A stretch of DNA of 24,329 bases from Paraphysomonas bandaiensis (Eukaryota; Protista; Chrysophyceae): NCBI GenBank assembly GCA_965644295.1, contig CBFFRP010000344.1:1-24329 (forward strand), written 5' to 3'. The translations under genes and the position numbers were made by a program. Every line of letters starts with the position of its first letter. Within the stretch, counting starts at the first letter, position 1. The notes beneath the pieces were generated by a model. The model had not been told where the DNA came from, ran no database searches, and worked only from the letters and a program-made list of their open reading frames with translations. Shown here piece by piece: positions 262 through 24,329 of the stretch.

Positions 262-954
262 ATGACGAAATCAGTTCTTTTGGTCTTAACGAACCATGGA
301 GTGGTGGAAGGCACGGATGTAGCCACAGGATGGTATCTTCCAGAGTGCGCTCATCCATATTTTCGATTCAAAGATGCCAATTACGACATATCATTCTGCA
401 GTGTGTCTGGTGGCGATACAACAGTTTCTCCAAGTAGTCTTGATATGACGGATGAAGAGAACAAATCATTCTGGGAGAATGCTGAGACGAAATCACTGAC
501 AGAAAACACCAAACCACTCTCTGATTTTGATGGATCAAAGTTTGATTGTGTCTTTTTTGTCGGAGGATTTGGAACGATGTGGGATTTCCCTGATAATGAA
601 CATGTACAGAGGGTAGCGAGAGAAGTTTACGAACGGGGAGGTGTTGTTGGTGCTGTATGCCACGGCCCCATTGCACTTGCCAATGTCAGGCTGAGCAATG
701 GTTCCCTTCTTGTGGAAGGTAAAGGGTGTACTGCATTCTGCAACGAGGAAGAAGCCCAAGCTGGTATGGAATCTCACTTGCCTCAGCGAGAAGGCGGTAA
801 GTCGTGCGAAGATATTCTCGCAGCACGTGGTGGTCGTTTCAGCAAGGGCGCAGCCTGGTCTAACCATGTAGTTTCTGATGAGCGGGTAGTTACAGGTCAA
901 AACCCTATGTCAGCGAGATCTGCTGCTGAGGCTTGCATTGCTGCTTTAGCATAA
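262..954 (+). CDS. DJ-1/PfpI (class I glutamine amidotransferase-like) family protein, Hsp31-like glutathione-independent glyoxalase/chaperone, 230 aa, intronless
   Basis: Single ORF with Hsp31-type motifs: TGWYLPECAHPY (conserved Glu), VGGFGTMWDF (family GGHG position), nucleophile elbow GAVCHGP (Cys-His), AFCNEEE, and C-terminal VVTGQNPMSA. Confidence 0.92.
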   Translation: MTKSVLLVLTNHGVVEGTDVATGWYLPECAHPYFRFKDANYDISFCSVSGGDTTVSPSSLDMTDEENKSFWENAETKSLTENTKPLSDFDGSKFDCVFFVGGFGTMWDFPDNEHVQRVAREVYERGGVVGAVCHGPIALANVRLSNGSLLVEGKGCTAFCNEEEAQAGMESHLPQREGGKSCEDILAARGGRFSKGAAWSNHVVSDERVVTGQNPMSARSAAEACIAALA

Positions 955-2204: not shown

Positions 2205-4370
2205 ATGGATATACCGGATAACTTAGATGATATAGCGGATCAGTTATCAGCTGCTATTAACAGTGCATTGAACGACAATGCGACTGATCCCTTAACAAGA
2301 TCCCCTTTAATCCCTCTAACCCCCCCTAGAGGACGAGATGAAACATCCTCTAGTGTTGGAGGGAATGATATGAATCAGACTGTTGAGGAAGCCACGAGAT
2401 CTGCTGTGCGGTACGGAAACTACCGGCCACTGCTCCAATTGTGCACAAGCACCAATGAACAGACTGTTCGAGCGGCGAGTGAAAGTCTTGTTGGGATTAT
2501 TGGTATGCTTCCCAATCATAAGAAAGTTGAATTATGCAAATCAGCTGCTCTTCCTATTATTTTTTCCTTGATGCATGTGCCTCAGCTTGTTGTGAAAGAG
2601 CATATAATGGGCGTATTGTTTACTCTTGCGAAATTAAGTGCAAATAAGAGTATTTTACTAACTGGTGGCGCTATATCACACGCAGTAAGTTCACTGAAAG
2701 ACAGTACGCCTCTTCTGCAGGAACTCGCTAGTGGCGTTATAATGAACTTGTGTGCAGAGGAGAGTGGGAAACGAGAGATCTCTCAAACCGATGGCATTGT
2801 TTTGCTAGTAGAAGCAGTTAAGGTGGGCACAGTGCGGTGCCAAGAGTTTGCTACTGGTGCTTTGATGAACTTGGCTGTTGAAACATCTCTACGACCACAA
2901 ATAGTTAGTGCTGGTGCCTTGCCTGCTCTGCTCTCTGTTTTGAGATCTAGTCCTCCACAGGGAAATCTGGAGAATGCTTTGGGTGCCCTCATAAACCTTG
3001 CCATATCCACTGAAAATAAGGTTCCAATTGTGGAAGCTGGGGCGCTCCCGGTGCTTGTTGACTTGCTGCAGAGTGCTTCCACTACAGTACAAGAGGAAGC
3101 AGCCGGTGCTCTTCTGTCACTAGCTGTGGCGAAGAACAACAAGCATGCTATTGCTGAGTCGCATGCTGTGCCGCAGTTGCTCACTCTGGTCCGGTCTGGC
3201 AACACAGGGGTGCAATGTAATGCCTTAGGTGCTCTTGTAAACCTGTCTTCTGAGCAGGATATACGATTGGAGATTGTTCGAAAGGGTGGGGCTGATACGC
3301 TTGTATACGCACTCCGGTCGCATGCAGGGGTTGTTGCCCAGCGAGCTGCCACTGTCCTTCTGAGATTAGCAGATTCTTTGGTCCACCGAGTACTGATGTG
3401 TCAAGCAGGTATAGTCGATAGTCTTGTGGAAGTTGTTGGGAGATTCCCTACACCTCCCATGAGGACCACAGCATCGGCTCTGCTATTGTCGCTCTCGCAA
3501 GATGATCGTACCCGCGCTGCTTTTGTGACTGAGGGCAGCGGGGCATTACAGATGTTGCGCAATATGTTGGGCGACCCGGATTCTGATCCCGGACTTCATG
3601 TGATAGAAAATGCATCGGGGTCTTTGCTTAACCTTTGTAATCAGCCCAGTATATTGAACATTCTGATGTCATACGATCTTGTCCCTTTGCTTGTGAAGCT
3701 TCTACCGATTGTTCCCAAGGATAGAGACTCTGGGGGTGTAGAAATGAGAAGAATGGTGGTAGCAGAGAATGCAGTGGAGCTACTACGTCTTTTCTGTACG
3801 ACGGACACCTTGCGGAAAGAGGTTGTCAAGGCGGGGGCAGTACCCTTGATGATTCGGTTGCTGGATATGGGAAGCCAAACGGCGAAAGAGTCAGCCGCTG
3901 GGCTCGCTATGAGTTTGTGCTACGAAGAATCATGTGCCAATGCAGTGCTTTCTGCCGGTGGTTTGCGGTCGCTGATGAATCTGTTATCAACTGGCACTGG
4001 CGCGATGCAAGAAGAAGCAATTTGTGCGATGTTATATTTGGCTGACGATGAGGAGAATAGATTTACCTTGGTGAGAGAGGGAGTACTCGGTCCTGTAGTG
4101 AAACTACTGCGGGTTGGGTCGCTGCAGTGCACTGCGGATGCAGTTGAGATCGTATCTCTATTGGCCGAGGAGCCGGAACTAAAGGCAGCCATCGGTGCAG
4201 CAGGCGCGATTCCACCTTTGATATCACTCATGCGACAAGGTGGTGATGTGACAATTAAGCGGACGGCTACACTCACGCTGCGATTATTAGCGGATAACTC
4301 CGAGTGTAGAGAACACATGAGACAGGCGTATCTCACTCCTCAGAGCATTCTATATGTAGGACCCTGGTGA
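2205..4370 (+). CDS. Armadillo (ARM) repeat protein, 721 aa, intronless; Vac8/U-box-ARM-like repeats, function unassigned
   Basis: Long ORF with tandem ~41-42-aa repeats such as IVEAGALPVLVDLLQSASTTVQEEAAGALLSLA, IVSAGALPALLSVLRS...ENALGALINLA and IGAAGAIPPLISLMRQG. The N-terminal ~60 aa are low-complexity. There is no MG myristoylation start, so it is not called VAC8. Confidence 0.9.
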   Translation: MDIPDNLDDIADQLSAAINSALNDNATDPLTRSPLIPLTPPRGRDETSSSVGGNDMNQTVEEATRSAVRYGNYRPLLQLCTSTNEQTVRAASESLVGIIGMLPNHKKVELCKSAALPIIFSLMHVPQLVVKEHIMGVLFTLAKLSANKSILLTGGAISHAVSSLKDSTPLLQELASGVIMNLCAEESGKREISQTDGIVLLVEAVKVGTVRCQEFATGALMNLAVETSLRPQIVSAGALPALLSVLRSSPPQGNLENALGALINLAISTENKVPIVEAGALPVLVDLLQSASTTVQEEAAGALLSLAVAKNNKHAIAESHAVPQLLTLVRSGNTGVQCNALGALVNLSSEQDIRLEIVRKGGADTLVYALRSHAGVVAQRAATVLLRLADSLVHRVLMCQAGIVDSLVEVVGRFPTPPMRTTASALLLSLSQDDRTRAAFVTEGSGALQMLRNMLGDPDSDPGLHVIENASGSLLNLCNQPSILNILMSYDLVPLLVKLLPIVPKDRDSGGVEMRRMVVAENAVELLRLFCTTDTLRKEVVKAGAVPLMIRLLDMGSQTAKESAAGLAMSLCYEESCANAVLSAGGLRSLMNLLSTGTGAMQEEAICAMLYLADDEENRFTLVREGVLGPVVKLLRVGSLQCTADAVEIVSLLAEEPELKAAIGAAGAIPPLISLMRQGGDVTIKRTATLTLRLLADNSECREHMRQAYLTPQSILYVGPW

Positions 4371-5789: not shown

Positions 5790-7846
5790 ATGCGTGTGTG
5801 TATCGGGCTGTTGTGCTTATGGCTTACAACTGCCGCTACCTCACTATGTACGTATACATATGCATGTACATGTATATGAGGACATCTCTGTGTGTATGTG
5901 TGTATGTATGAGCATCTCTATGTACGCATATGCATATATGGGTATGTGAGTACAGGTCTCTATGTACGTATGTATGTATGCATGTATATGTATATGTATG
6001 TACCATATCTATACGAGGAGGTGTGTGTATACGTGTGGCAGCCTCTGCATATGCATCTCTATGAGGATATATATACACGTTATGAGTCTAATGGCTCTGC
6101 AGATGACCCCAATGCCCCTCAGATCGATCCTGTGCATGGCAATAGAGGCCTGATGATCGACGCAGGTGTGGTTCGGACATACATCTGAAGGTCACTTAAC
6201 GTTAAACGCATACAGGAAGCGGTGGATCCCGTCTGCATATCTTCTCATGGGAACCGGTAATACCATGTACATAAACTATTACGCCGTACATAACTATGTG
6301 TTGCTGTGTAGCGAGTATTCAACACCGCCCCCCCCCCACTATCCTTTCCCAAGTCTGACGAAAAAACCACTGAACGTATCAGTCCGGGAATGTCTTACTA
6401 TACAGACGACTACGAAGGACTGAAGAAGTATTTTGCGTATCTCATTGACCTCGCCAAGATTACTTTGGCTGAGTACAAGGAGTACTGGCATACTTACCCG
6501 ATATATCTGAGAGCAACTGGTATGACCACTGGTCGTTATAATATTATCTTGTGTGTTATGGTTGCGCTCATTCAGGAGGAATGAGATTGGTTCCAATGGC
6601 TCGCCGGGAAAGTATGATGGCGTATACACGCGAGCTATTCTCAGACAAGGAATTCTGTCCTTTCTTTTTCCAGTTCGACTTTGCTCGTGTTATGTCCGGC
6701 GAAGAAGAAGCTGTCTACGCGTGGGCAGCAGCCAACTATCTTTTTGGCACCCTCCTTCCTAATATACATGGTTCGGGAGCTGTTAATAAACCTATCAAGG
6801 GCACCTTTGGCACCGTCGACCTTGGCGGTGCATCTACACAGATCGCGTTTTTTGTTCCCTCACAGGACGTTTCAGAGGGTTTATTCAAATTACAAATTGG
6901 GTCTCAGCGCCACTGGAACGTTTACGCCAAGTCATTTTTAAAGTACGGTCATAATTCTGCTCGAGAGCGCCATTTTGACCGGCTAGTGGCCGCTGCTAAA
7001 GCCAATGACAGTGCCAGTGCAATAGACTACTGTTTCTACTCTGGCTACCATGAAACTATTTCTTCTGTTACGTTATCTGGCCCAGCCGACCCGATATCCA
7101 ACCAATTCGACTTATGTGCAAAGAGCTTGATGCCTCTAATGCAAAAAGAACTTAATTCTTTTTGCAATACTGTGTATGATGGCGAGTGTAGTATGGACGG
7201 CTTCTACCAGCCCAAATTGCCTAGCTATACTGACGGACACTTCATTGGCTCTGCCACGTACAAGTACCCATGGAACTTTCTCGAGATGCCCGAGACTGCG
7301 TCAATAGATGAATTTAAGGAGAAAGCCAAAAATATATGTGCTATGTCATATAAGGACATCAAGATATACAGCTCCAAGCTGAAATCAACCATCAAGAAGA
7401 ATGAATTGATTCCCTACTACTGTTTCTTGAGTGCATACATCACAGTACTACTAGAGAGTAAGTATAATCTGTGAGTATAGTCTGTATGTCATGTAATATC
7501 TTATTATGCAGATGGATATGGGTTCACGAGCAATCAGACGTTCACTGTCATTGACAACGTTGCTGGTCACAAGGTGGGATGGGCTCTGGGCTCAATGCTG
7601 TATGAAATAAACGGCCTCCCTTACATTTTGTCGCCTCCTACTTGGAAGGAATGCATCGGAAAAGTGACAGCTGGTGTTATTGGCGGTGAGATAGTTTTAT
7701 AATAGAATTACTTATTGTACAATATCTGACGCCTTTACATAGGACTAGTATTCGGGTGTGCCATAACTTGGTACTTTTTGAGCGTGACGAAAAAGCCCTT
7801 TACTCGCCGCAGTGGTTACGACACTATTCCGGGGAACGAGTTATGA
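5790..7846 (+). CDS. GDA1/CD39 family apyrase (E-NTPDase), ~509 aa, signal peptide plus C-terminal TM; exons 5790-5847, 6103-6165, 6216-6256, 6312-6519, 6576-7457, 7512-7685, 7743-7846
   Basis: All introns are GT-AG and the frame is continuous (1530 nt). The spliced product contains all five apyrase conserved regions: IDAGSGGSRLHIF, LRATGGMRL, SGEEEAVYAW, DLGGASTQI, VGWALG. The N-terminus MRVCIGLLCLWLTTAATSL is signal-peptide-like. The C-terminal hydrophobic segment is VTAGVIGGLVFGCAITWYFL. Confidence 0.92.
5848..6102 (+). repeat. Low-complexity TATG/CATCTCTATG-rich tract making up apyrase intron 1 (255 nt)
   Basis: Bounded by gtacgt...ctgcag. It contains recurring units resembling catctctatgtacgtatgtatg and explains the spurious MYVC-type ORFs in the track. 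Confidence 0.8.
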
Positions 7847-9341: not shown

Positions 9342-10975
9342 TTATCTCGTGGCTAGTACAGTAGCACCGCTTGATGTGTTCATTGCAACTTGTCCACCAG
9401 CTTTCATCAACATTAGCTCAGAGAGCATCTCTGCTCTTGTAACACTGCCCGTGGATGCCCGAGAGCTCAATATCTCGTCACACAATAGCATGGTCTGAAC
9501 ATCCTTGTTATCAGAAGGCGTGATAAGCATATGATCATTGCTGGAAAGAGATGAAAAGACTTTAAGCTTTCGAAGGTTTGTCTCATGAATATTGTACTCT
9601 TTGAGTAATGGAGCGATTGTTCCTTCTGCATCGGCAGTGATCTCCATGGCCTTTGCATCGTTCCTCTCAACCTCCAGTTTTGCTTCCGATAATTTTTCGA
9701 CGCAATATAAGTCTGCTTCAGCCTGAATTGCCGCTGCCTTTGCTTTACTCTGCGCAGCAAGTTCTGAAGTGATCCTATTTCTTTCCTGAACCAACATGGT
9801 AACTTCCAAGTCTGCTTCTGCATCAATAGATTGCAACAGAACTTGATTTTCTTCGACCATTAATCGAAGTTTCTTGTCCTCTTGTGCTTTCATGGATTTA
9901 AGATTAACTGCCACCTCGTTTCTTTTTTGTTCACCGTCTTGCTTTTCTTTTAGTCGATCTTCCTCAAAGGACTGAGTCATTAGTTTCAGGTCCTCACTGA
10001 AGTTAAGCTGCGAAAACAGTTAAACAAAACACAAAATTCAAGTAAACGGAACGTACATCTTGCATTTCAAACTGCTGAGTCATTATTTCCTGTGCGTTGC
10101 TCGAAATGACCAAAGTCTTGTTTGTCATCTGTTGAACAATCTCTGTAGGAAGCTGAACATCAGTTATCATGACATCCGTGATCTGTACTCCCTGGGGCTG
10201 GAACTGCCTGTTGAGCAACTTGATCATTCGTGCAGTCGCTCCTTCTCCCTTGAACACAGCCCGGGAAGCCTGTGTCTCATCCCCAGCGTCATGTTCACCA
10301 ACCAATAGAGTTGAAGACTGATCTGTACTCGCCATTTCAACCCCGACTTCGTCCGTTTCGAAGTGTCCTCCATCATCGACAACGTATTCGACAGTACTTC
10401 CGCGAACAGTAAGGTTACGTAGCCCATACACTTCTCTGTGCTTCATACTACGAGCAAGCATGCGACATGCTTCATCAATCGCATCAGTCAGTTGCTGCTG
10501 CAGCCCACGTGGGCTGACCTCATGCACGAACTTACGGACTAAATTAGGGTCCTCGTTCTTGTCGGCATTTCCCATTATACGAAACACACAAGCGATGTCT
10601 ATTTGAATGGTGACGTTATCAAGGGATTTACACCCTTTGCACGGAGTATCAAATACAAGATATCCTTTTCTCACTAGATGAGACACTTTTTTCCATGGCA
10701 TCCCAAAATGATATCCCGGACCCCACACCTGTAAGAGTACATATATATGAGCCAACGGACATTCCTATACGCTAAATACTTACGCAAGATCCAGTGGCAG
10801 GGTCATTTATTTCAGCTCCATTACTAGTAACAAGTGCATAGAATCCCTCAGGTACTGTAAACCATGGGTTACAGTTTCTGCCTGGAGTTGCAACAAGTAA
10901 CTCTGGATTGGCTCCAAACTCCTCAGCAGCATTTAAAGTGGATGATATGGCGGCTTGCTGAAGATTATCTGGCAT
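9342..10975 (-). CDS. SPFH/band-7 (stomatin/prohibitin/flotillin) domain protein, ~509 aa; exons 10975-10784, 10728-10057, 10007-9342
   Basis: Two phase-0 GT-AG introns (55 and 49 nt) join three ORFs. SPFH-type motifs: FTVPEGFYALV, WGPGYHF, CKSLDNVTIQIDIACVFRI, LNRQFQPQGVQITDVMITDVQLP. The C-terminus is an Ala/Glu-rich coiled coil (AKAAAIQAEAD...ADAEG). Confidence 0.85.
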
Positions 10976-12317: not shown

Positions 12318-15081
12318 CTATGAAAATGCAGCAATAGCTATAGCCGAGACAACAACAGCTGTCAAAGCCAAGGCCTCAAGCACTCTAGCTGTCCACTTCT
12401 CCCTCGAGTAGTTGTACACGGCGTATTTTCGCAGAATATCAACAGAGAATATGTGCTCTGCAGATAGCCCAAGAACCTCAATCCACTCCCAGTCACCAGC
12501 AACTATATGATCACCACTACTTTCTGCACTAGCTCCAATTTCCATTTTCTGCATCGACGTTGGCGCTAGACGGGATGCGCTTCCCTGCACTCATGCGTTA
12601 ATCAACAGGTAGAGAAAATGCCATTGTATACAGCGCATTCCTCATAATTAATTATCCCTATGTGGTAACACAGAGTTTCATTTGACATACCTCGCTACAT
12701 CGGGATTTTGCAGCCTCAAGCTCTAATTCCCCTCTTCTCTCTGGACTGACGGGAGCAGATCCAAACTTCTCTATGTGCTCCCACTCTAATCTAAAAAATC
12801 CCCATACCATCCTACGCACTATTTCGGCAGCAGCCATTACAGTCTGGAAGTTTCGGAAGATGTAATTATAAAGGACAGAATACCTATAGCATCCATGTTA
12901 GCCAAAAATAAGCATATATAATATGTATCATACCGCTGCAGATCTTGTGGAAGGAGTGTTATAGCCCAAGAAAATCTGAGAAGGAAATTGCAGCAGACTA
13001 CTGCGACGTACCACCCAGTACTGCATATAGACCTCTCTTTTCTAATGTATATACCTTTGGACACGGAATATCTTACAAGCCCCCAGTCCATCGTTATATC
13101 CCAGAAAAATTGATAGCATGTGGCGAATAGAAGGCCTAGAATCCAGACTGGGTTGTGTTGAATGGTTGGTCGGAACACCGCAAAAGAAAATACCACCATG
13201 GCGGAGCAGTACTTTAGGGCGTTAAAGTAATGTGGCCATCTTTGACCTGTCTCCACAGATCGACGAAGACATTGCATAAACCGGATCCACAGAGGGAATA
13301 TTGTCAAGAAGGGGATTAGTATGAAGCGATACAGAGTGGAGTACTTCCACGAGGGCGTGTGTACTGACTCAGCAGCATTGATATGGTTAGATATCCACCA
13401 GTACGCAGTCATTGCCAGATATATTAGAGAAAAAGATAAACTAATTGAGACTCTCACAAGAGATGTGAGTAAATCACCTGCACATTTCGCGCATGAATAA
13501 GAGACAATACATACATGAAATTCGTATACTTACCAATATAGCCATCCCTGAATATTACCGGGTGAGCAGGAGCAGTGAGCACATCCCCCAACATACGCAA
13601 GTACGTCGCCCTAGACTTGAGCGGAGAGAAGAAGCGTACAATGTAAACGACTAACAGCAGTGAAGGCAGAGCATGAGCCGCAGCAGGTTCTCCGTGCAGT
13701 GAGAAAGACCCTCGTAGAGCCTTGTTAAATAGGATAAAGCACACCAAGTAGGCGAGGGTCAGATCTGTAGTTGACTGAATGACAATGTCCTCTGCAGCCT
13801 CTGGAGAGTGAACGGCCGCCTGTGCTACATCGGTACCCCCCAAAGACAGAAGGGTAATGTAATCGATACCAGAAGTTCGCCACACCCGCATACTTACGCC
13901 CCACATCAGCAACAGCAGTGTAAGGTCCCCAAGGCATATAAATATTGAAAATGTAGGATCCTGTGAATAGTTGATAATAGTTAGCATAGCCACATCATGA
14001 TGGCTATGTCGGCACTTACTTCCCAAATATCTCTACCGAGGCGCTCGTTGTTCATACACTCTGAGACAGCCCACAAGAGAAGTATTACGACCATACCGCG
14101 CTTGAATGAGGACCAATCTAGTCCACTGCGACTAGACTTCGATCTCTGGTTGTTAAAATATAAGACATTCACGCATGAAGAAGACAAAATAACTCACATA
14201 TTGAGATAATCTACATTCTGCAAGATCTATACTGCCTCGCATATACCCCTCTGCCACCGCCTCCTTCACCCGCTTTAACAAATCCCGCTCCTGCGCCATA
14301 TCGCAGCATATTATTACGCATAATATGAAGCAGAACCGTGCGACATAAGAAAAAAAGAAGAGCTACCTACCTCAGCAGTGTCTAGGAACCGGTGCGCCGT
14401 TAAGTCGATAAGGTATGGTTGAACAACCATTCGCACACGTGCTCTGGCGTTTGCAATACTACATTCCTCCGCTAATTCCGTCAAGAGTGCTGCACACAAA
14501 AGTTATAACGTACCACGCCCACATATTTACAGTTAAAACACTACACTCTATACTAAATTTCACATACCTGTGTACTTAGCAAGAATTTCATCGATGAGCT
14601 CCATTGCATGTAACTTTATAGTTAGTATTTCATATACTTCATTGTGGAGTTTCTGAAGAGGAGGATGCATTTCCCTTTTTGTTTGAACTATAACACTACT
14701 ATTGTCAATAGTGGGTCGGTTTTCAGATGGAGCTGCAGGCAATGTGTCCCATGAGATATCAGCAACGACTTCCTTTGCAATGTCATCTCTCTCTTTGTCA
14801 CGCACTGCACTCACAGCTGTCACCATGCCATGCTGCAGTCTATCGTATTTCTCCCGTAACAGAATTAAAGTTGCCTGCTGATTAATAAGTCCAGTATTGA
14901 GCGTATCGGTGATGGCCTGACACATACGGCGAAGTCCAGGGATGTTACTATCACCGAAGCTCTCATCAGTGTCTACTTTAGCAAGACTCAGTGCGTCATA
15001 TCTGTCCATATGCTTCCCATCACACAACTGTTTGAATATCTGATCAAGTGTAATAGCAGTCTTTTCTACTGTAGATGACAT
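12318..15081 (-). CDS. XPR1/SYG1/PHO1-type SPX-EXS phosphate exporter homolog, ~760 aa, with a degenerate SPX domain; exons 15081-14568, 14489-14371, 14290-14198, 14145-14020, 13960-13534, 13477-12934, 12883-12691, 12584-12318
   Basis: GT-AG splicing gives one open frame (2283 nt). EXS motifs: FRDGYIGDLLTSLVR, PLWIRFMQCLRR, HYFNALKY, FWDITMDWGL, LRFSW, EIVRRMVWGFFRLEWEHI. The linker VKEAVAEGYMRGSIDLAECRL...WSSFKRG resembles the XPR1 SPX-to-TM linker. The last intron (106 nt) is the least certain. Confidence 0.88.
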
Positions 15082-16558: not shown

Positions 16559-17707
16559 CTATTCTATGCCCTCGGTAACTATTTTTATGGACCACCCGAA
16601 TATTTTTTCAAACAAACACAATGAGGGTATAAACACCCGTTTAGTGTTATCTATAATTCGCTTGTCGTCAAAAGTGTACGGCGGATGAATTTGCGTGGCG
16701 ATCCCAGCATTGGTTCTGGCATTATGGAGTGCTGGATCAGTATTTTTCTGGACAATCCCAAATCCGTTTGAGTCCACACTGTCCGACAAAGCTAGTACGG
16801 CGTTCTTCGAAACTGAAAGAAGGGTTCGATTTGCATAGTTATGGTGATGTAGACCCATGAAATCCTCAAGTTTTCGCATTGTTTCGTTCGGGTGATTCTC
16901 AAGATCGTAATGATCGATGACGTGAATGCTACGCATGCTAAACACTGTTAGCCAGTTCAATATTATTTCCGCGTAGAGATAGTCATTTACTCTAGCAAGG
17001 TGATACACAGCCCTACGACTCGTACGAATATTGTCCTTATACTGATGACTGATCATTTTGCTCTGCATGCGTTGTATAAGGGAAGTGTACTCCTGTGGAT
17101 CATTGTTGCGCTTTACCATTGCCATCCAGGAACCTAGACGCTGCCAAGGATCCCGAACCATAAACACCACTTTCGTTCTAGGGCTATAGTGCTTTATATA
17201 AACAGCAGCATTGAAATCCCGGAACACTCCACTCGAACAATCCATCCAATAATGTCCCTTCAGACTTCGTTTGTTATCAGATACTTTCCGTTCCAGAGAT
17301 TCCCATGAAAAAACATGGTACTTGGAGAAGATATTGATTTCCTTCTTTCTATAAGTCTTTATATCAGGGTGTGTGGATAGCTTCCTACATATCGCTGTAG
17401 TGCCACACTTGGACACCCCGACTACGATCACTGCAGGCAGACACCATGTGCATGATTCCCCTTTACGAGAGAGAGACTGACATGGCCATGTATAACATGG
17501 AATACCTGATATATTATCGATACAACGAGATGCGTTAATATCCTCAAGATTAGAGAATACATGAGCGATAGTGGACGATTTGTTTCGACGAGGCTCCGGG
17601 AGGGTTGGGATGTGATAGTGTTTACTGCATTTAAGGGAACTGGATGTGAGGTGAAGGATATAGGGGGCTATGAACAGGTATATGCATATCCTGGACAGAT
17701 ATCTCAT
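16559..17707 (-). CDS. PAPS-dependent sulfotransferase, heparan-sulfate 3-O/N-sulfotransferase-like fold, ~382 aa, intronless, probable type II membrane/Golgi protein
   Basis: 5'-PSB loop VVGVSKCGTTAI, KKEINIF, and 3'-PB motif MVRDPWQRLGSW. The N-terminus MRYLSRICIYLFIAPYILHL is hydrophobic. The track's start at 17746 is a GTG; the first in-frame ATG is at 17707. Confidence 0.85.
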   Translation of the reverse strand: MRYLSRICIYLFIAPYILHLTSSSLKCSKHYHIPTLPEPRRNKSSTIAHVFSNLEDINASRCIDNISGIPCYTWPCQSLSRKGESCTWCLPAVIVVGVSKCGTTAICRKLSTHPDIKTYRKKEINIFSKYHVFSWESLERKVSDNKRSLKGHYWMDCSSGVFRDFNAAVYIKHYSPRTKVVFMVRDPWQRLGSWMAMVKRNNDPQEYTSLIQRMQSKMISHQYKDNIRTSRRAVYHLARVNDYLYAEIILNWLTVFSMRSIHVIDHYDLENHPNETMRKLEDFMGLHHHNYANRTLLSVSKNAVLALSDSVDSNGFGIVQKNTDPALHNARTNAGIATQIHPPYTFDDKRIIDNTKRVFIPSLCLFEKIFGWSIKIVTEGIE

Positions 17708-18045
17708 CACAACAAGTATGCATAGAGCCCTGTGACCCACTCCCACATATAGCCTGAGGAAGGAGTGAGATACTCTGCCCAGTCATTATGTATGTATGTA
17801 TGTATGTATGTATGTATGTATGTATGTATGTATGTATGTATGTATGTATGTATGTATGTATGTATGTATGTATGTATGTATGTATGTATGTATGTATGTA
17901 TGTATGTATGTATGTATGTATGTATGTATGTATGTATGTATGTATGTATGTATGTATGTATATATGTGTGTGTATAGGTACGAGTAGAGGGGTACGGTGT
18001 TGAGAGGTGTTCGATGTGCTGTGGATTTTAAGTTAATTCGCTTCT
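17708..18045. promoter_or_regulatory. Putative compact bidirectional promoter/5'UTR region shared by the sulfotransferase (-) and TTI1 (+)
   Basis: Head-to-head start codons only 338 bp apart. Positional inference only. Confidence 0.5.
17787..17961. repeat. Perfect (TATG)43 microsatellite
   Basis: Uninterrupted tatg units from 17787 to 17958 plus a partial unit. Confidence 0.98.
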
Positions 18046-21000
18046 ATGAACCAGCCACTCGCATTCCGTCTATGTCTAGATCTCCTGGAAGCAGAGAAAG
18101 ATCTCTCCCCTGGAGGTATTCCTGCAGTAGTTGACACTCTTCGGAGGCTCTCCGAGTCCATCTCGTCGTCCTCCTTATCCACCAACACACTCCATCAGGT
18201 TACACACACACACCCATCTATAAGCTCATATACACACTAACACACACATACAGATCACTCCCATTATATTCAAGACTATCTCTAGACTGTTATCCTCCTC
18301 TATCGATGTGGGGACCTGCGCAGTGGTTCATATGAAGATGGCTGTCGCTTGTGTAGACTGTGAGCTTCAGTTAATTAAATCCTTATCAAACGGATCTAAA
18401 CTGGAGACTGTTTATCAAAATTCTAGTGATACTTTTAGTAAATTGTTGTTTCTTAATATTGCTGTACTTGAATGTGTGAAGGCGTCATCGAGTGGTTCTG
18501 ATGGGGAGCATATGCTAATCAGCTGTTTAGACTTCTTTGCTACAGTTCTCTGCACATGGGGTACACAGTTAGGATCTTCACCGGCCCTTACGGGACCCTA
18601 TTTAGCTCAACTAGTTCAATCTTGCCTTGTTTATGTCTCACATCGGTAAGGATAAATAATGCCACACAAAGTATTCATTTTGCTGTTATTATGGTTTTCG
18701 ATTATGGACAGCTTGTATAAATACTCTTTGTGATTATGAGTTAAACCCATGTAACCTAATTTACATTCTTCTAGGTCGAAGGAAGTTGCCCACAAAGCTC
18801 TTCACGTCCTGTCTGCTCTATTGTCATCATTGTATGATGGACACGTTTCTGACTGGCGAACTTTCTATCCTGGCATATTCGGTGGCTTGTATACCTCATG
18901 CTGCGCAGGCTATAAGCGGTAATTGGAATACTCAGAACTCGTTTTAGTTTATTTAACTGCGTGCTTTGTGCAGCGGCACAGCTGTTTTGGTTCTGTCGCT
19001 GGACTGTCTTTTGCGCGTGACTACTTTGGTCACTGCTGACGCTCGCAACGCACATATCATTGGCGCTTCACCTTCTACTTCTGCGTCATCCAGGGCTGCT
19101 TTTGACGAAATAGTTCGAAAAGCCTCTGGTATCAAAGACACTAATCCGACAAGCGCTATCACTAGCAGGGATACAGAGGGGAAAGGTAATATAACGCACG
19201 ACAGAGGGAGCACAGTAAATCGGAATGATGGTATGCCAATAACGGAGGCAAATCACAAGTGGCGGGCAGATACAGCCCAACGAGTTGCTCATCACCTTCC
19301 TGCTGCATTTAGGTGCTGGAAATAATCTACTTGTTAATATCTGGAATTGATATTTTTGCTCTTCAGGGTGGTCTGGTCCGGCATTCCTCCCACCGCAGTA
19401 CGTCAGCGCAAACAACTGATGTCGTCATTGTCGTGCCTCATTCAGTCCTCCTCTCTCTTTTTTGGCAGGGTTCCGACATCTGATTTCATGGTACTTCTCT
19501 TAGAGTGTACGCTTGACCCAATGCCAGAGATATCAGACTTTGCGAAGGAGCGTGTCGATGCGATGAAGTGCATACTGTCCCATGCAATGTGGACAGATCT
19601 ACAGTCATCGTTCATATCGGTACTTATAGTTTCCTTGATATTTCACGAATTGTTACTTTGGTGTTATTTCAACATTGGTTTTTTAGAGATTTGTGGATGC
19701 AGTATGGGAAGTGGGAAGGCTTGCTCCAAGTGATGGTGGCGGAAGCAAAGAAGAGGCTATAACTTCACAATTGTCTACTGCCCTGGCAAGTGGAATGGCG
19801 TTACCACGCCAGGCACTCGAGAGTTGCGTCGCTATCCTCCTTTCCTCGTCCACTACAAAGTCGGAAAGTTATGACAGCAAACACGAAGTAGTGGTACACA
19901 AACAAAGCCCTTGGAGAAAATACGAGCGGAAGTGGGGAGGACTTAGGTGTGATATCATATGATGTATGAAAGCATAGTTTTAACATCAGATACAGCTGTC
20001 TCCAGCGGCTCTTCGTTCCGGACATTTCGCCTTCCACCGGTCCAGCTAAAAGGACGTGTATTCTTTGCTCAAAGAGGTACTTTTCGAGTTCGAGGGAGAT
20101 CTATGTCGATGCGGGTTATTACAGGTGTGCATTAGATTTTGTTGCTCTTGGGATCTTATTTTTCCCAGGGCGCCCTATATGCACTTACGTGAGGGGGGTA
20201 GTATGGCAGGAAATCGTGCTAGTTCTGATGTGCCTCTACCGCCTTCAACTACTATTGGCCGAGGGATTGCGGTTGCAGCTCAATTGGCAGCACTTATTGG
20301 CTCTGTTGAGGGTACGACTGGTATACGCTTACGTAATTTCTTAGTGATTTTGTGTATAATAGTTGTGGCCGATGCCCTCGTTGAATTATGGCGATATGCT
20401 CTCAGAAAGTCGATTAAACATGCATCTCGCTCAAGCTACTTTCAACGCAATGCCAATACGGGGAGCGGAAATGACGACGATGAAGCCAGCAACTCTCACT
20501 TGAAAGATGACACACTATCCAAGACGAGTAACATTAAAATGGCTATAGCTGCCACGAATCTATTGATGTTCGCAGTGCAGCGCCAAGAAAAGGAAAATGA
20601 TGTTTGCGAAGACCCTTCATTGAATGACTTGCGCGTGGAATGTGGCTTTTGTGGAGCACCAGGTGTGAAAGGTGAAGCTGCACAGTCTTTACCTGTGAGA
20701 AAGGGTAGGGTATAAATATATTTGAGGTGACGTTTTGTAATAGCATTCCACAGAGTTACCAGTAATGTTGAGATGTTCGAAATGCAAAACGACTTATTAT
20801 TGTTCTAAATCTCACCAAATTAGTCACTGGTCTGTGCATAAGGTATACTAGATCTCCGATATATATGCCCATCCTGATCGCCATACACTAGGGTAAATGC
20901 AAAAAGACCACAGAAATTAAGACGAGGATAGTCGGTGATGATAGCATTGCTGATGACGTCAAAGTACCAAAAGTGCCTGAAAGGTTTTCTGGTTCAGCAT

Positions 21001-23944
21001 GTTCAGCGGAATTATGCAAGTCAATAATCACCTCCATAGTTTCTTTCTTGCAAGATTTTCTCTCATTGGAAACAACTTACCACAATAGTAGAAATAGTGA
21101 AACTAGTATCAATGCCACATTGATGGAATTACTTGTCTCTGGAGTACTCGAGTTACTGGCCGCGTTAGGTTGCGCCTTTCCGGAAACGCTCCGTGAGTGC
21201 TTGATGGAGGTACATCTTGTTACGCAACCTTATATCTGCCACAATGATTTTTTCCTTTCTAGGTGCTTGTTCCCTTGCTTTGTGTATGCATGCACGAAGG
21301 AGCAACTGGAAGTGGTGCTGGTTCGGTAGGAATAGCAAGACAAGCTTCTTTATCTACTTTGTCCCGTATAACTTTGGATCTGGGATATCGCTCTGGTCGG
21401 CATTTGTTGAGGTATATCATACACTAATTTTATCTTAGCTCTTACATGTCCACTAATTTTATTGAACGCTTACGCAGGCATAACCTAGATTACATTGTTG
21501 ATGAAGTGTGCTCGATCCTTCGGTTCGTTCGACGAACCGACATGCATTCGTCTGCTCTAGGTATTGGTCATCTTCACACTGGGCTCCGTGACGACAGAAT
21601 TATTCGTGTAGTTGGGGCTGTTTTCATGGAAATCAGTTCCACGGAAACTGATTCGTGTGATGCTTTACCCCATACCAGTAAATTAGTTTCGGGTGATGAT
21701 GATAGAGTTGAGATGTTGATGCGAGATATGGTGAATGATGCACTCGATGCTACGGATTCTCTTTGTTCAGATGCCACTCAATATGCTACACCAAGTACGC
21801 CGTTGATAGGGTATGTTGATGAGTTGAACGCCAGCCGTCGTGCAAAAGTAAACTTGTACTTTACTCTGATTATTGCTGACCAATGTGTTGTTTCGTAGCA
21901 CTTACTGGGTCCCCTACTCGGGCTCATGTATAGCTTAGTTGTCAGGTGTGTGGTTGTGTGATATCACTGTTATTCTTTGATAGCATCTCTGTAGAGCTTG
22001 TCTCCCCGTGTCGAACTTGCCTGAGAAATATATGCCGTCAAGTTCCAAACGCATTTTGTTTCCTTTTCCATTTGTCTTGACTTCAATGCCAAGGAACAGT
22101 GAAGTTCATGAATTACGGACAGATCGAACCAAATTGAAAGAAGACAATGGAAACGAAAGCTCTAACGTTTCATTGTCTTTTGATTACGACTATATTATTG
22201 CTTCCATCCAGAAGTTTCGAAAATCCTTAGATCGTCGCAAAGAGGTCTTTTCTGTGGTTCCTGAAGAACCAGATCTAACGTCGCCAGCAGCGGTGGTTGG
22301 GACTGAGGATGAACCAGAAGAAGCGTTTAGTGATGATGAGGAAGAAGACGCGCAGTACAAGAGGCCTCTAGAGATGATACGCAACATTCTTGAACGATGT
22401 TGCTATTTCATAGCCGTTAATGATATTCACGCCCAAGTAATTTAGTGTATAGTTATTCGTTAATTCGTTAATGTTGCTTTTTCTTTCGTCAGATAATGGT
22501 AGTAGCTACAATGACAGCGTCTTTTTCAAGACTTGCCAACAACAGGTAAATAATTCTAACCTATGACATATAGTTTATGTTTCAATGTTCGCACAGAAAA
22601 GTGCTACTGCCTGCTGCTCACAAAGCATGGCCGTCTATCATGAATCGCTTTAAGGAGCAGCGAGCGCTATTTTTATCCCCATACCTTCGTCCGTCACAAC
22701 TGGTATCGGAGTCAGGAAGTACTGTTGGGAGGTCTGCTTACCTGTTGCAACACTTACTTGATCTCGTGTCACTACTCGCTCTTATATGTGGGGACTTTAT
22801 GTCAATAAAATTTAAGGTTTGTTTATTACATTGTGTGTGCCGTAGTGTAATATTTGAAAAGGATGATCTCTGGGATGAACTTGTATTGATATTTCACGCA
22901 ATTTCGCGTGATGCGAATGACTCACTGGCCAAACACTTAGCACAGCAGCATAAACAGCTCGCGTCAATATCGGATAAACAACCAGCAATGCAAATGAAGG
23001 ATGTATTACTTGTAGAATCGAAGTCATCCGAAGGACGCGAATTGCCAAATGTTAGTCAACAATCGACGACGACGTCGAGTCTTTTCGTTCGAACAAGTCA
23101 CTCAATGGCTGATAAGTTGAAGCTAGCTATGCTGGAATGCCTCCGCCATTTAGCGGAAATCGATTTTTCTAATAGCGTCAGTCAATATGTTCGTAGAGGA
23201 AAAGAAAATAATGTAAACTCAAGTGATGAAATGTTTGGCCCTGATATAGAATTGTTTGCTGCGAGGGGAACCACGAGTTCGAATCCAATGAGAAGCATTA
23301 CGCCAGTTTGTGCGTTCTTATTACTTCCTCTTCTCGGTAGCCATGAGGTAAGGCAGATAATTTGAGAAGCTGGAGTTATATATTCATACCTATCTGCTTG
23401 TTATTATAGAAACAGTCTGTACGAGATTCCGCTGTGAAGACATTGCTATCTCTGCACAGGTATACCTATCTCAACTGCTAACTGCACCATGTTTCTTACA
23501 TACACGTACTGCAGTCTTGATAGTGCATGTGTTGGAGCCATGCTCCGAAGTGTCTACAGCAGTGGTTTTCACTCGGGTGGATTAGCCTCGAAGTACGCGG
23601 ACATCACTTCGAATACTGAGAATAGTACGCAGCTAGTAGAATCTAGAAGCACAGCAGAGTCTGTGTGGGCGGCGGTAATCACTCTCCCTGAGATTGTTGA
23701 ATCGTACCAGCGCTTTGGCAAGCTCACAGGGAATAAGAAGTCGACGTTAACGGCGAAGTATACTTCGGAGAGTAAATCTGGAGGGTTCCTTTTGAAGGAA
23801 AGGGAGGCATCAACTCGTGCCTCGGTTGGGGTTAGCAATAGTAGTTTCAATGATTCAGTTCCGAACGAGAAGGATTTGTTAAAACATTTTACACATGATA
23901 GTAGTGTTCTACTATCTATTCGACAAGTACTACTGAGGGAATGA
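18046..23944 (+). CDS. TTI1: TELO2-interacting protein 1 homolog (TTT complex HEAT-repeat subunit), ~1604 aa, ~20 exons, with an internal MYND zinc finger; exons 18046-18198, 18254-18645, 18775-18918, 18974-19312, 19367-19619, 19687-19946, 19990-20124, 20169-20311, 20363-20704, 20754-20842, 20892-21209, 21263-21411, 21478-21847, 21899-21945, 21995-22436, 22493-22545, 22597-22816, 22862-23347, 23410-23459, 23515-23944
   Basis: All introns are GT-AG and the frame is continuous (4815 nt). TTI1-type motifs appear in the expected order: WRTFYPGIFGGL, LGYRSGRHLLRHNLDYIVDEV, acidic linker EDEPEEAFSDDEEED followed by ILERCCYF, LLPAAHKAWPSIMNRF, ICGDFMSIKFKDDLW. Confidence 0.85.
20641..20900 (+). other. 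MYND-type zinc finger domain within TTI1, encoded across exons 9-11
   Basis: The spliced translation CGFC-x24-CSKC-KTTYYC-SKSH-QISHWSVH-KGKC matches the MYND pattern CxxC...CxxCxxxxYCxxx(C/H)QxxxWxxHxxxC. Introns 20705-20753 and 20843-20891 are both 49 nt and GT-AG. Confidence 0.88.
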
Positions 23945-24329
23945 ACAGTTAGGGTTAGCATTCTTAGTTTTCTAGTGGTAATATGGTATATTTTGATATG
24001 TATTTAGAAGTCGTGATAGGTGTACAGAGAATAAGTATAGGACTGTATCGTATTATAGGGTTACAGTAGAATGACATGTGCCCGATGCAGCTATAATCTG
24101 CCAAGTCTTTTAATACAGTTGAATGTCACGCCTGAAGCATAAAAATTTCCCGCTATAATTTTTTTAAAAAGTATTTAACGCAGAACATAATAGTAACCTT
24201 TGCTGAGTTTCGCCTTTTAAAATCTTCAAATCAAAGTTTCTGAAGTAATAAATTAGTCAGAGACAGGATTATATGAAATTTAATGAATACGCTATATGAG
24301 ATGGTTTACACGTTACACGAACTGTGTAT

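Follow-up and report, generated by a model that had tools for sequence, protein, structure and literature searches.

An internal MYND zinc finger in a divergent TTI1-like protein of Paraphysomonas bandaiensis

The DNA analysed here, referred to below as the window, is a stretch of 24,329 nucleotides (nt) of Paraphysomonas bandaiensis (contig CBFFRP010000344.1), and it contains a 20-exon gene whose product is almost certainly a real, expressed TTI1 with an internal MYND zinc finger. As judged from its relatives, the gene encodes a divergent TTI1, the HEAT/TPR scaffold of the TELO2-TTI1-TTI2 (TTT) co-chaperone, which matures kinases related to phosphatidylinositol 3-kinase (PIKKs). The protein contains the finger constitutively, and comparison with TTI1 proteins across a deep clade indicates that both the finger and its predicted groove residues are conserved. 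On balance, we favor the interpretation that the finger would serve as a flexible docking site for a proline motif, the likeliest partner being a protein of the HSP90 pathway. The gene represents a known protein in a new form and not a new kind of system.

Gene structure and splicing of the MYND-encoding exon

The coding sequence (CDS; Table 1) was rebuilt from transcript joints. Fifteen intron joints were read directly from transcript contigs aligned to positions 18300-24000, and introns 2-4 were placed by their GT-AG ends, with an exact fit to the own coordinates of a contig from the run X1. Intron 1 was positioned from its GT-AG ends, the open frame and a weak homology of residues 6-53 to the related locus L001, and the start codon is likewise a prediction. 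All 19 introns are of the GT-AG type, 17 of them being 44-67 nt long, and the frame stays open over 1,602 codons. A single 5,016-nt X1 contig covers the gene and crosses every intron, the unspliced sequence is present in the DNA run X13, from which the assembly probably derives, and a polyA marine metatranscriptome (X5) yielded only the 3' half of the gene, with identical joints there. Of the public runs listed, 7 contained at least half of the sequence words sampled along the gene.

The original prediction had removed two 49-nt GT-AG introns around an 89-nt exon to obtain a peptide in frame with its TTI1 surroundings. In line with this, direct reading of the window showed GT and AG at 20705 and 20753, the ends of the first intron, and at 20843 and 20891, those of the second; splicing in the frame of the preceding ORF (20056-20715) yielded the predicted peptide. 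The contig joints (20703>20753 with the cut at +1, and 20840>20890 with the cut at +2) remove 49 nt each, with GT..AG ends. Both joints, corresponding to the junctions 20704/20754 and 20842/20892, were present in contigs of two studies, X1 (organism A, study P1) and X4 (organism B, study P4). No joint that skips exon 10 was found among those listed for the X1 and X4 contigs, which are assembled sequences from which minor isoforms could escape.

Leaving out exon 10 would shift the frame and lead to a stop at codon 719, while retention of intron 9 or of intron 10 would place a stop at codon 721 or 750, respectively. Since skipping and intron retention both truncate the protein, exon 10 is obligatory and not a cassette; nor is it a symmetric shuffled cassette, because its flanking introns are in phase 1 and phase 0. 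Its 29 codons are too few for the list of open reading frames (ORFs), which explains the absence of the exon from that list, as originally remarked. No MYND-like pattern was found in any unspliced frame of the window, and therefore the finger exists only after splicing. In a wider sense, tiny exons in intron-rich protist genomes can conceal whole domains from ORF-based annotation.

Apart from the invisibility of the exon to ORF lists, no support was found for the notion that it belongs to another gene, that it is an alternative or cryptic exon, or that it arose as an artefact of assembly or annotation. The probability of this notion is negligible: transcript contigs from two independent studies cross the junctions, skipping of the exon or retention of its introns truncates the protein, and genomic contigs of three relatives (P0003, P0011 and L004) encode the finger together with the TTI1 domains in a single continuous ORF, which rules out a splicing or annotation artefact. 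Within the resolution that contigs offer, the separate-gene and artefact explanations were rejected.

Two further features of the gene structure were observed. The orthologous region of L001, L002 and L004 is a single ORF of 1,141-1,247 codons, as opposed to the 19-intron gene of the window, and introns 9 and 10 are therefore lineage-specific. In addition, the 45-nt intron at 22817-22861 is in frame and free of stops, such that its retention would add 15 residues without truncation; it was spliced out in all X1, X4 and X5 contigs.

Table 1. Coordinates of the TTI1-like gene, its parts and the neighboring genes in the window (aa, amino acids)
Feature	Position	Strand	Remarks
TTI1-like gene, CDS	18046..23944	+	20 exons, 1,602 aa; rebuilt from transcript joints
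TTI1 exons 1-7	18046-18198, 18254-18645, 18775-18918, 18974-19312, 19367-19619, 19687-19946, 19996-20124	+	
TTI1 exons 8-14	20169-20311, 20363-20704, 20754-20842, 20892-21209, 21263-21411, 21478-21847, 21899-21945	+	
TTI1 exons 15-20	21995-22436, 22493-22545, 22597-22816, 22862-23347, 23410-23459, 23515-23944	+	
N-terminal helical region, ~aa 54-252	18260..19040	+	Homology to the N-terminal TPR region of TTI1 in relatives
MYND zinc finger, aa 698-751	20641..20900	+	Across exons 9-11; Pfam PF01753
Intron 9	20705..20753	+	49 nt, GT-AG, phase 1; joint in X1 and X4 contigs
Exon 10	20754..20842	+	89 nt; encodes MYND ligands 3-7 plus Q740 and W744
Intron 10	20843..20891	+	49 nt, GT-AG, phase 0
Central 'TTI1' domain match, PF21547	21478..21559	+	13.6 bits; aligned region in relatives 36-42 bits
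TTI1 C-terminal TPR domain, PF24181	22164..23347	+	Exons 15-18; LLPxAHKAWPS hallmark at ~22601-22633
DJ-1/PfpI	262-954	+	Pfam
ARM-repeat protein	2205-4370	+	Pfam; single 721-aa ORF
GDA1/CD39 nucleoside phosphatase	6551-7474	+	Pfam
Band 7/SPFH protein	10003-10755	-	Pfam
EXS/XPR1-like protein	12837-14026	-	Pfam
Sulfotransferase	16559-17746	-	Pfam

The finger, its TTI1 host and their relatives

The spliced 58-aa peptide matched the Pfam zf-MYND profile (PF01753) with 41.1 bits and an E-value of 1.8e-10, the gathering score being 22.7, which bore out the original assignment. Within the 1,602-aa model, all eight zinc ligands (C698, C701, C726, C729, C735, H739, H747 and C751) follow the order C-x2-C ... 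C-x2-C-x5-C-x3-[CH]-x7-H-x3-C, and the finger is predicted to bind zinc. The end of exon 9 encodes the first two ligands and most of a 24-residue loop, exon 10 encodes the core, and C751 is encoded at the start of exon 11. The sixth ligand is His, as had been noted, which is a known variant that is also present in ZMYND12. The gap between the first and the second Cys pair comprises 24 residues compared to the canonical 8, and for this reason Pfam aligned only positions 7-39 of the profile.

The fold, which in MYND domains comprises a beta-hairpin and a C-terminal helix around two zinc sites, was modeled by AlphaFold2 (AF2) for the finger alone of a relative, P0006 (residues 335-405, with six homologues), and not for the window protein; a predicted local distance difference test score (pLDDT) of 81.4 was obtained. 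All top PDB matches of this model in Foldseek were MYND domains, namely those of ZMYND10 (2dan; probability 1.0, TM 0.55/0.64), SMYD2/3, ETO2 with a peptide (9de2), AML1-ETO and DEAF1.

The identification of the host as TTI1, likewise proposed at the outset, is carried by its relatives. An exhaustive phmmer search with window:22598-23347 as query returned 15 representative proteins. The full-length relatives matched the spliced protein in blastp comparisons with E-values of 1e-73 to 1e-51 over ~1,000 aa, at 23-29% identity; they exceed the Pfam cut-offs for the central 'TTI1' domain PF21547 (36-42 bits) and the C-terminal domain TPR_TTI1_C, PF24181 (50-75 bits), and they score 33-40 bits on zf-MYND. 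A profile built from four relatives retrieved human TTI1 from the PDB (7ole_H, E 5.9e-12) in two collinear stretches, in addition to TTI1 9wjy_A (8.6e-10) and Tti1 9wjs_A (9.9e-10). The window piece alone had TTI1 9wjy_A as its sole PDB match (E 0.8), via the LLPxAHxAWPS motif. When scored by Pfam as single exons, as opposed to the whole spliced protein, the window sequence gave 13.6 bits (E 0.062) on PF21547, and two separate exons gave 19.6 and 22.1 bits on PF24181, collinear at profile positions 33-112 and 128-153; the cut-off is 27 bits in both cases.

With regard to the N-terminal part, the first 250 residues matched ORFs located directly upstream of the main ORFs of relatives (E 6e-23 and 3e-16). 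In particular, the former value was obtained by tblastn for residues 54-252 against the ORF upstream of P0011 (L002:73-720), which itself scored 22.6 bits on TPR_TTI1_N (PF24173), under the cut-off of 27. The N-terminal exons of the window, scored singly, showed no Pfam match (PF24173, PF24176).

In comparison with human TTI1 and yeast Tti1 (7OLE, 9WJY, 9WJS), the window protein belongs to the same family, as the E-value of 5.9e-12 of the clade profile indicates, and shares the LLPxAHxAWPS hallmark and an all-helical make-up; its matches to the central TTI1 and TPR_TTI1_C domains, sub-threshold in its own exons, follow the same order. It is nevertheless very divergent, the direct match having an E-value of only 0.8, and it is ~500 residues longer than the 1,089 aa of human TTI1 (PMC8278493). 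Moreover, the human and yeast proteins are described in the literature as consisting largely of HEAT repeats, whereas the window protein has a zinc finger in an internal loop. The original statement that no MYND finger was known in TTI1 agrees with the papers found, in which TTI1 and the TTT subunits are largely HEAT repeats and no zinc finger is mentioned; this includes a 2023 review of TTT (PMC10178989). Similarly, a full-text search for TTI1 with MYND found no paper describing such a finger. In public collections, the relatives are unnamed or 'hypothetical' proteins, although all three domains appear in their precomputed Pfam annotation. The architecture is thus visible in databases, with no paper found that describes it.

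The original prediction had further suggested that the finger was added by this lineage. In this form the suggestion was not supported, as the finger is an old insertion shared by no fewer than seven further, highly divergent TTI1 proteins: a MYND finger with His as the sixth ligand occupies the same loop in P0002, P0003, P0006, P0011, P0016, P0019 and the L004 ORF (1,247 aa). Its position is N-terminal to the central TTI1 domain and immediately behind a conserved helix with the consensus ALQWAIGAxExLHxTLLGL. The eight zinc ligands are invariant among these MYND-bearing relatives, and the mean pairwise identity is 60% in the MYND core versus 37% in the whole protein. P0011 and L004 possess the canonical 38-residue finger, with a gap of 8 between the Cys pairs, while an enlarged loop of 24-33 residues is present in the window protein and in the five relatives nearest to it. 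Three other TTI1 proteins (P0020, P0021 and P0022) lack MYND and have a low-complexity loop at the equivalent position after the conserved helix.

In a maximum-likelihood (ML) tree, which was unrooted and had unlabelled taxa, the window protein grouped with the five long-loop proteins (support 100/98), and the MYND-bearing L004 was sister to the MYND-less P0020 (1,507 aa; support 100/99), whose insertion site is a Cys-free, low-complexity loop. The simplest history compatible with these sequences would be one old gain of the finger and at least one loss, in P0020.

As for the scope of these comparisons, a word-indexed protein search was weak, returning 4 proteins with the four-sequence profile and 4 with residues 500-810 of P0011, and a metagenome scan gave 3 loci, one of which (L004) was new and informative. 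Two ESM Atlas feature searches returned generic MYND or HEAT/ARM clusters only, below 0.9. A separate observation concerns P0007 (774 aa), which scored 331 bits on TPR_TTI1_C through 13 repeated stretches, all confined to profile positions ~125-162; it appears to consist of tandem copies of the LLPxAHxAWP segment or to be an artefact of assembly.

A predicted docking groove and its candidate partners

The likeness to the MYND finger of PHD2 (EGLN1, ZMYND6), to which the original prediction had drawn attention, extends to the peptide-binding residues. In PHD2, mutagenesis showed that Q47 and W51 contact PxL and that R32 and K55 form salt bridges with the acids around the PxLE motif of p23 (PMC6916684); its MYND finger also binds PxLE motifs of FKBP38 and of HSP90 itself (PMC4201282). 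The equivalents of R32, Q47, W51 and K55 in the window protein are R725, Q740, W744 and K748, and those of R35 and R37 are K728 and K730. These equivalences were derived by placing the published residue numbers on the 38-residue spacing of canonical fingers (21-58, where C42 is a ligand). All seven relatives have R, Q and W at the corresponding positions without exception, and either K or R at that of K55. The two fingers thus have in common the His sixth ligand, the basic residues at R32, R35, R37 and K55, the Gln (Q47) and the Trp (W51), and in P0011 and L004 also the exact 38-residue spacing. They differ in that the PHD2 finger is N-terminal on a prolyl hydroxylase, while that of TTI1 sits within a HEAT scaffold and, in the window clade, has a loop of 24-33 residues between the Cys pairs. 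The shared features do not amount to evidence of common descent, and the His sixth ligand occurs in ZMYND12 as well.

On these grounds, the TTI1 finger probably binds a linear peptide motif. It lies in a loop that separates the N-terminal/second TPR region from the central 'TTI1' domain, and from there, on flexible linkers, it would dock a short proline-containing linear motif of the PxL type, possibly PxLE, of a partner protein. In the full-length AF2 model of P0011 (nine sequences), which is of low confidence, the finger forms a small unit of one hairpin plus a helix, with coil at 304-329 and 368-423 and long helices beyond. That the finger is looped out from the solenoid on flexible linkers, a point raised in the original prediction, is only suggestive.

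The likeliest partners would be the HSP90 tail, p23 or a co-chaperone similar to FKBP38/FKBP8, and docking would tether the HSP90 machinery directly to the TTT scaffold, as a second tether. That the partner is indeed an HSP90-pathway protein is a tentative proposal, itself rather doubtful. In many eukaryotes, the tail of cytosolic HSP90 carries PxLE just upstream of MEEVD, which makes it a candidate partner only. The hand-over of PIKK clients from TTT to HSP90/R2TP is still debated, and the known bridge, in which the phosphorylated TELO2 linker binds PIH1D1, is dispensable in some settings. In human TTT, central TTI1 binds the N-terminal domain of TELO2 and the C-terminus binds TTI2, and the phosphorylated TELO2 linker is the only described tether between TTT and R2TP (PMC8278493, PMC10178989), which is why such a finger, borne by the scaffold on a flexible loop, would be well placed to provide a second one.

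A precedent is offered by ZMYND10 (DNAAF7), whose MYND finger is the best solved structural and sequence match of the TTI1 finger. ZMYND10, PHD2 and ANKMY2 all bind FKBP8, and ZMYND10, itself a MYND-bearing co-chaperone, recruits FKBP8-HSP90 to very large clients, the dynein heavy chains (PMC6044906), acting with FKBP8-HSP90 and R2TP-like complexes in dynein assembly. In contrast to TTI1, it is a separate small protein with a C-terminal MYND finger and Cys as the sixth ligand, and its clients are not PIKKs.

A related explanation is that the finger docks a TTT member or a client instead, through a proline motif of the TELO2 linker, TTI2, an R2TP subunit or a nascent PIKK, and would thereby strengthen assembly or client capture. 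In favor of this, the finger is positioned N-terminal of the central TTI1 domain; the central part of human TTI1 is the site of the TELO2 N-terminal domain, and TTI1/TTI2 contact the kinase region of PIKKs (PMC8278493, PMC10178989); the groove residues, moreover, are generic to MYND. However, the basic residues with which PHD2 recognizes the acidic end of PxLE (R32 and K55) are retained here, and a search of TTI1 for an in-cis ligand revealed neither a PxLE nor a PxLxP motif that was both conserved and exposed; P.LE recurs only in a buried HEAT helix that is also present in MYND-less proteins. We consider this explanation unlikely, though worth keeping in view.

The finger could also be a structural zinc module, or a relic, without a ligand of its own, which would stabilize the hinge that joins the two halves of TTI1 or make it more rigid. 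The SMYD methyltransferases provide an example of such a role, as their MYND packs against the catalytic domain (PMC4201282). In these enzymes, MYND is inserted within another domain, as in TTI1, and matches the TTI1 finger with a local root-mean-square deviation of 0.4-0.9 Å over 30-55 residues; the host, in contrast, is a SET-domain enzyme of unrelated function on which the finger is packed. The variability of the enlarged 24-33-residue loop and the fact that P0020, a close relative of a MYND-bearing protein, manages without the finger also speak for such a role. Nevertheless, the non-ligand surface groove residues Q, W, R and K/R are invariant or conservatively exchanged among proteins that are only 23-29% identical, and long coil, rather than packing, is predicted with low confidence around the finger, which makes a purely structural role very unlikely.

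Returning to a docking site for a proline motif, several points weigh against it. The exons of the window itself are sub-threshold on the Pfam TTI1 profiles, such that family membership is deduced via relatives, and the gene content covered is that of the window, so that a second, MYND-less TTI1 elsewhere in the genome has to be counted as a caveat. The PHD2 equivalences depend on residue numbers and spacing. The Q and W groove residues are typical of most MYND fingers and do not single out PxLE or HSP90; indeed, MYND fingers bind varied PxLxP-type motifs in unrelated pathways. Furthermore, the unusual 24-residue loop between the Cys pairs could change the first zinc site, the finger is dispensable in some lineages, as the TTI1 of P0020 is without MYND, and the pLDDT of the full-length P0011 model is poor (52.8), the reason why looping out is only suggestive.

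A more specific version of the HSP90 proposal would be that, in a deep, probably stramenopile clade, a PHD2-type finger grips PxLE of the HSP90 C-terminal tail or of p23/FKBP, and so forms a phosphorylation-independent TTT-HSP90 link that supplements or replaces the one through CK2-phosphorylated TELO2 and PIH1D1, as the original prediction had envisaged in part; we regard it as improbable. If it were true, PHD2, ZMYND10 and TTI1 would represent three independent uses of one MYND-to-HSP90 docking code, and TTI1 would join the other two as a third client-specific HSP90 adaptor equipped with a MYND finger. In any case, a TTI1 with a conserved predicted docking finger constitutes a simple testable model, which could show an extra contact from which the TTT scaffold benefits.

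Neighboring genes

The other genes assigned by Pfam in the window are listed in Table 1. The GDA1/CD39 gene shares 98% identity with an MMETSP transcript; among its relatives with a taxon name, those of the brown and yellow-green algae Ectocarpus and Tribonema show 46-53% identity, and one record labelled 'Symbiodinium', perhaps a contaminant, shows 66%. This pattern is compatible with a stramenopile, although it is no proof of one. A perfect (ATGT)n microsatellite of ~43 units (17788-17962) was observed in the divergent intergenic region of ~300 bp that separates the sulfotransferase-like gene on the reverse strand from the start of the TTI1-like gene on the forward strand, the place at which a shared promoter would be expected.

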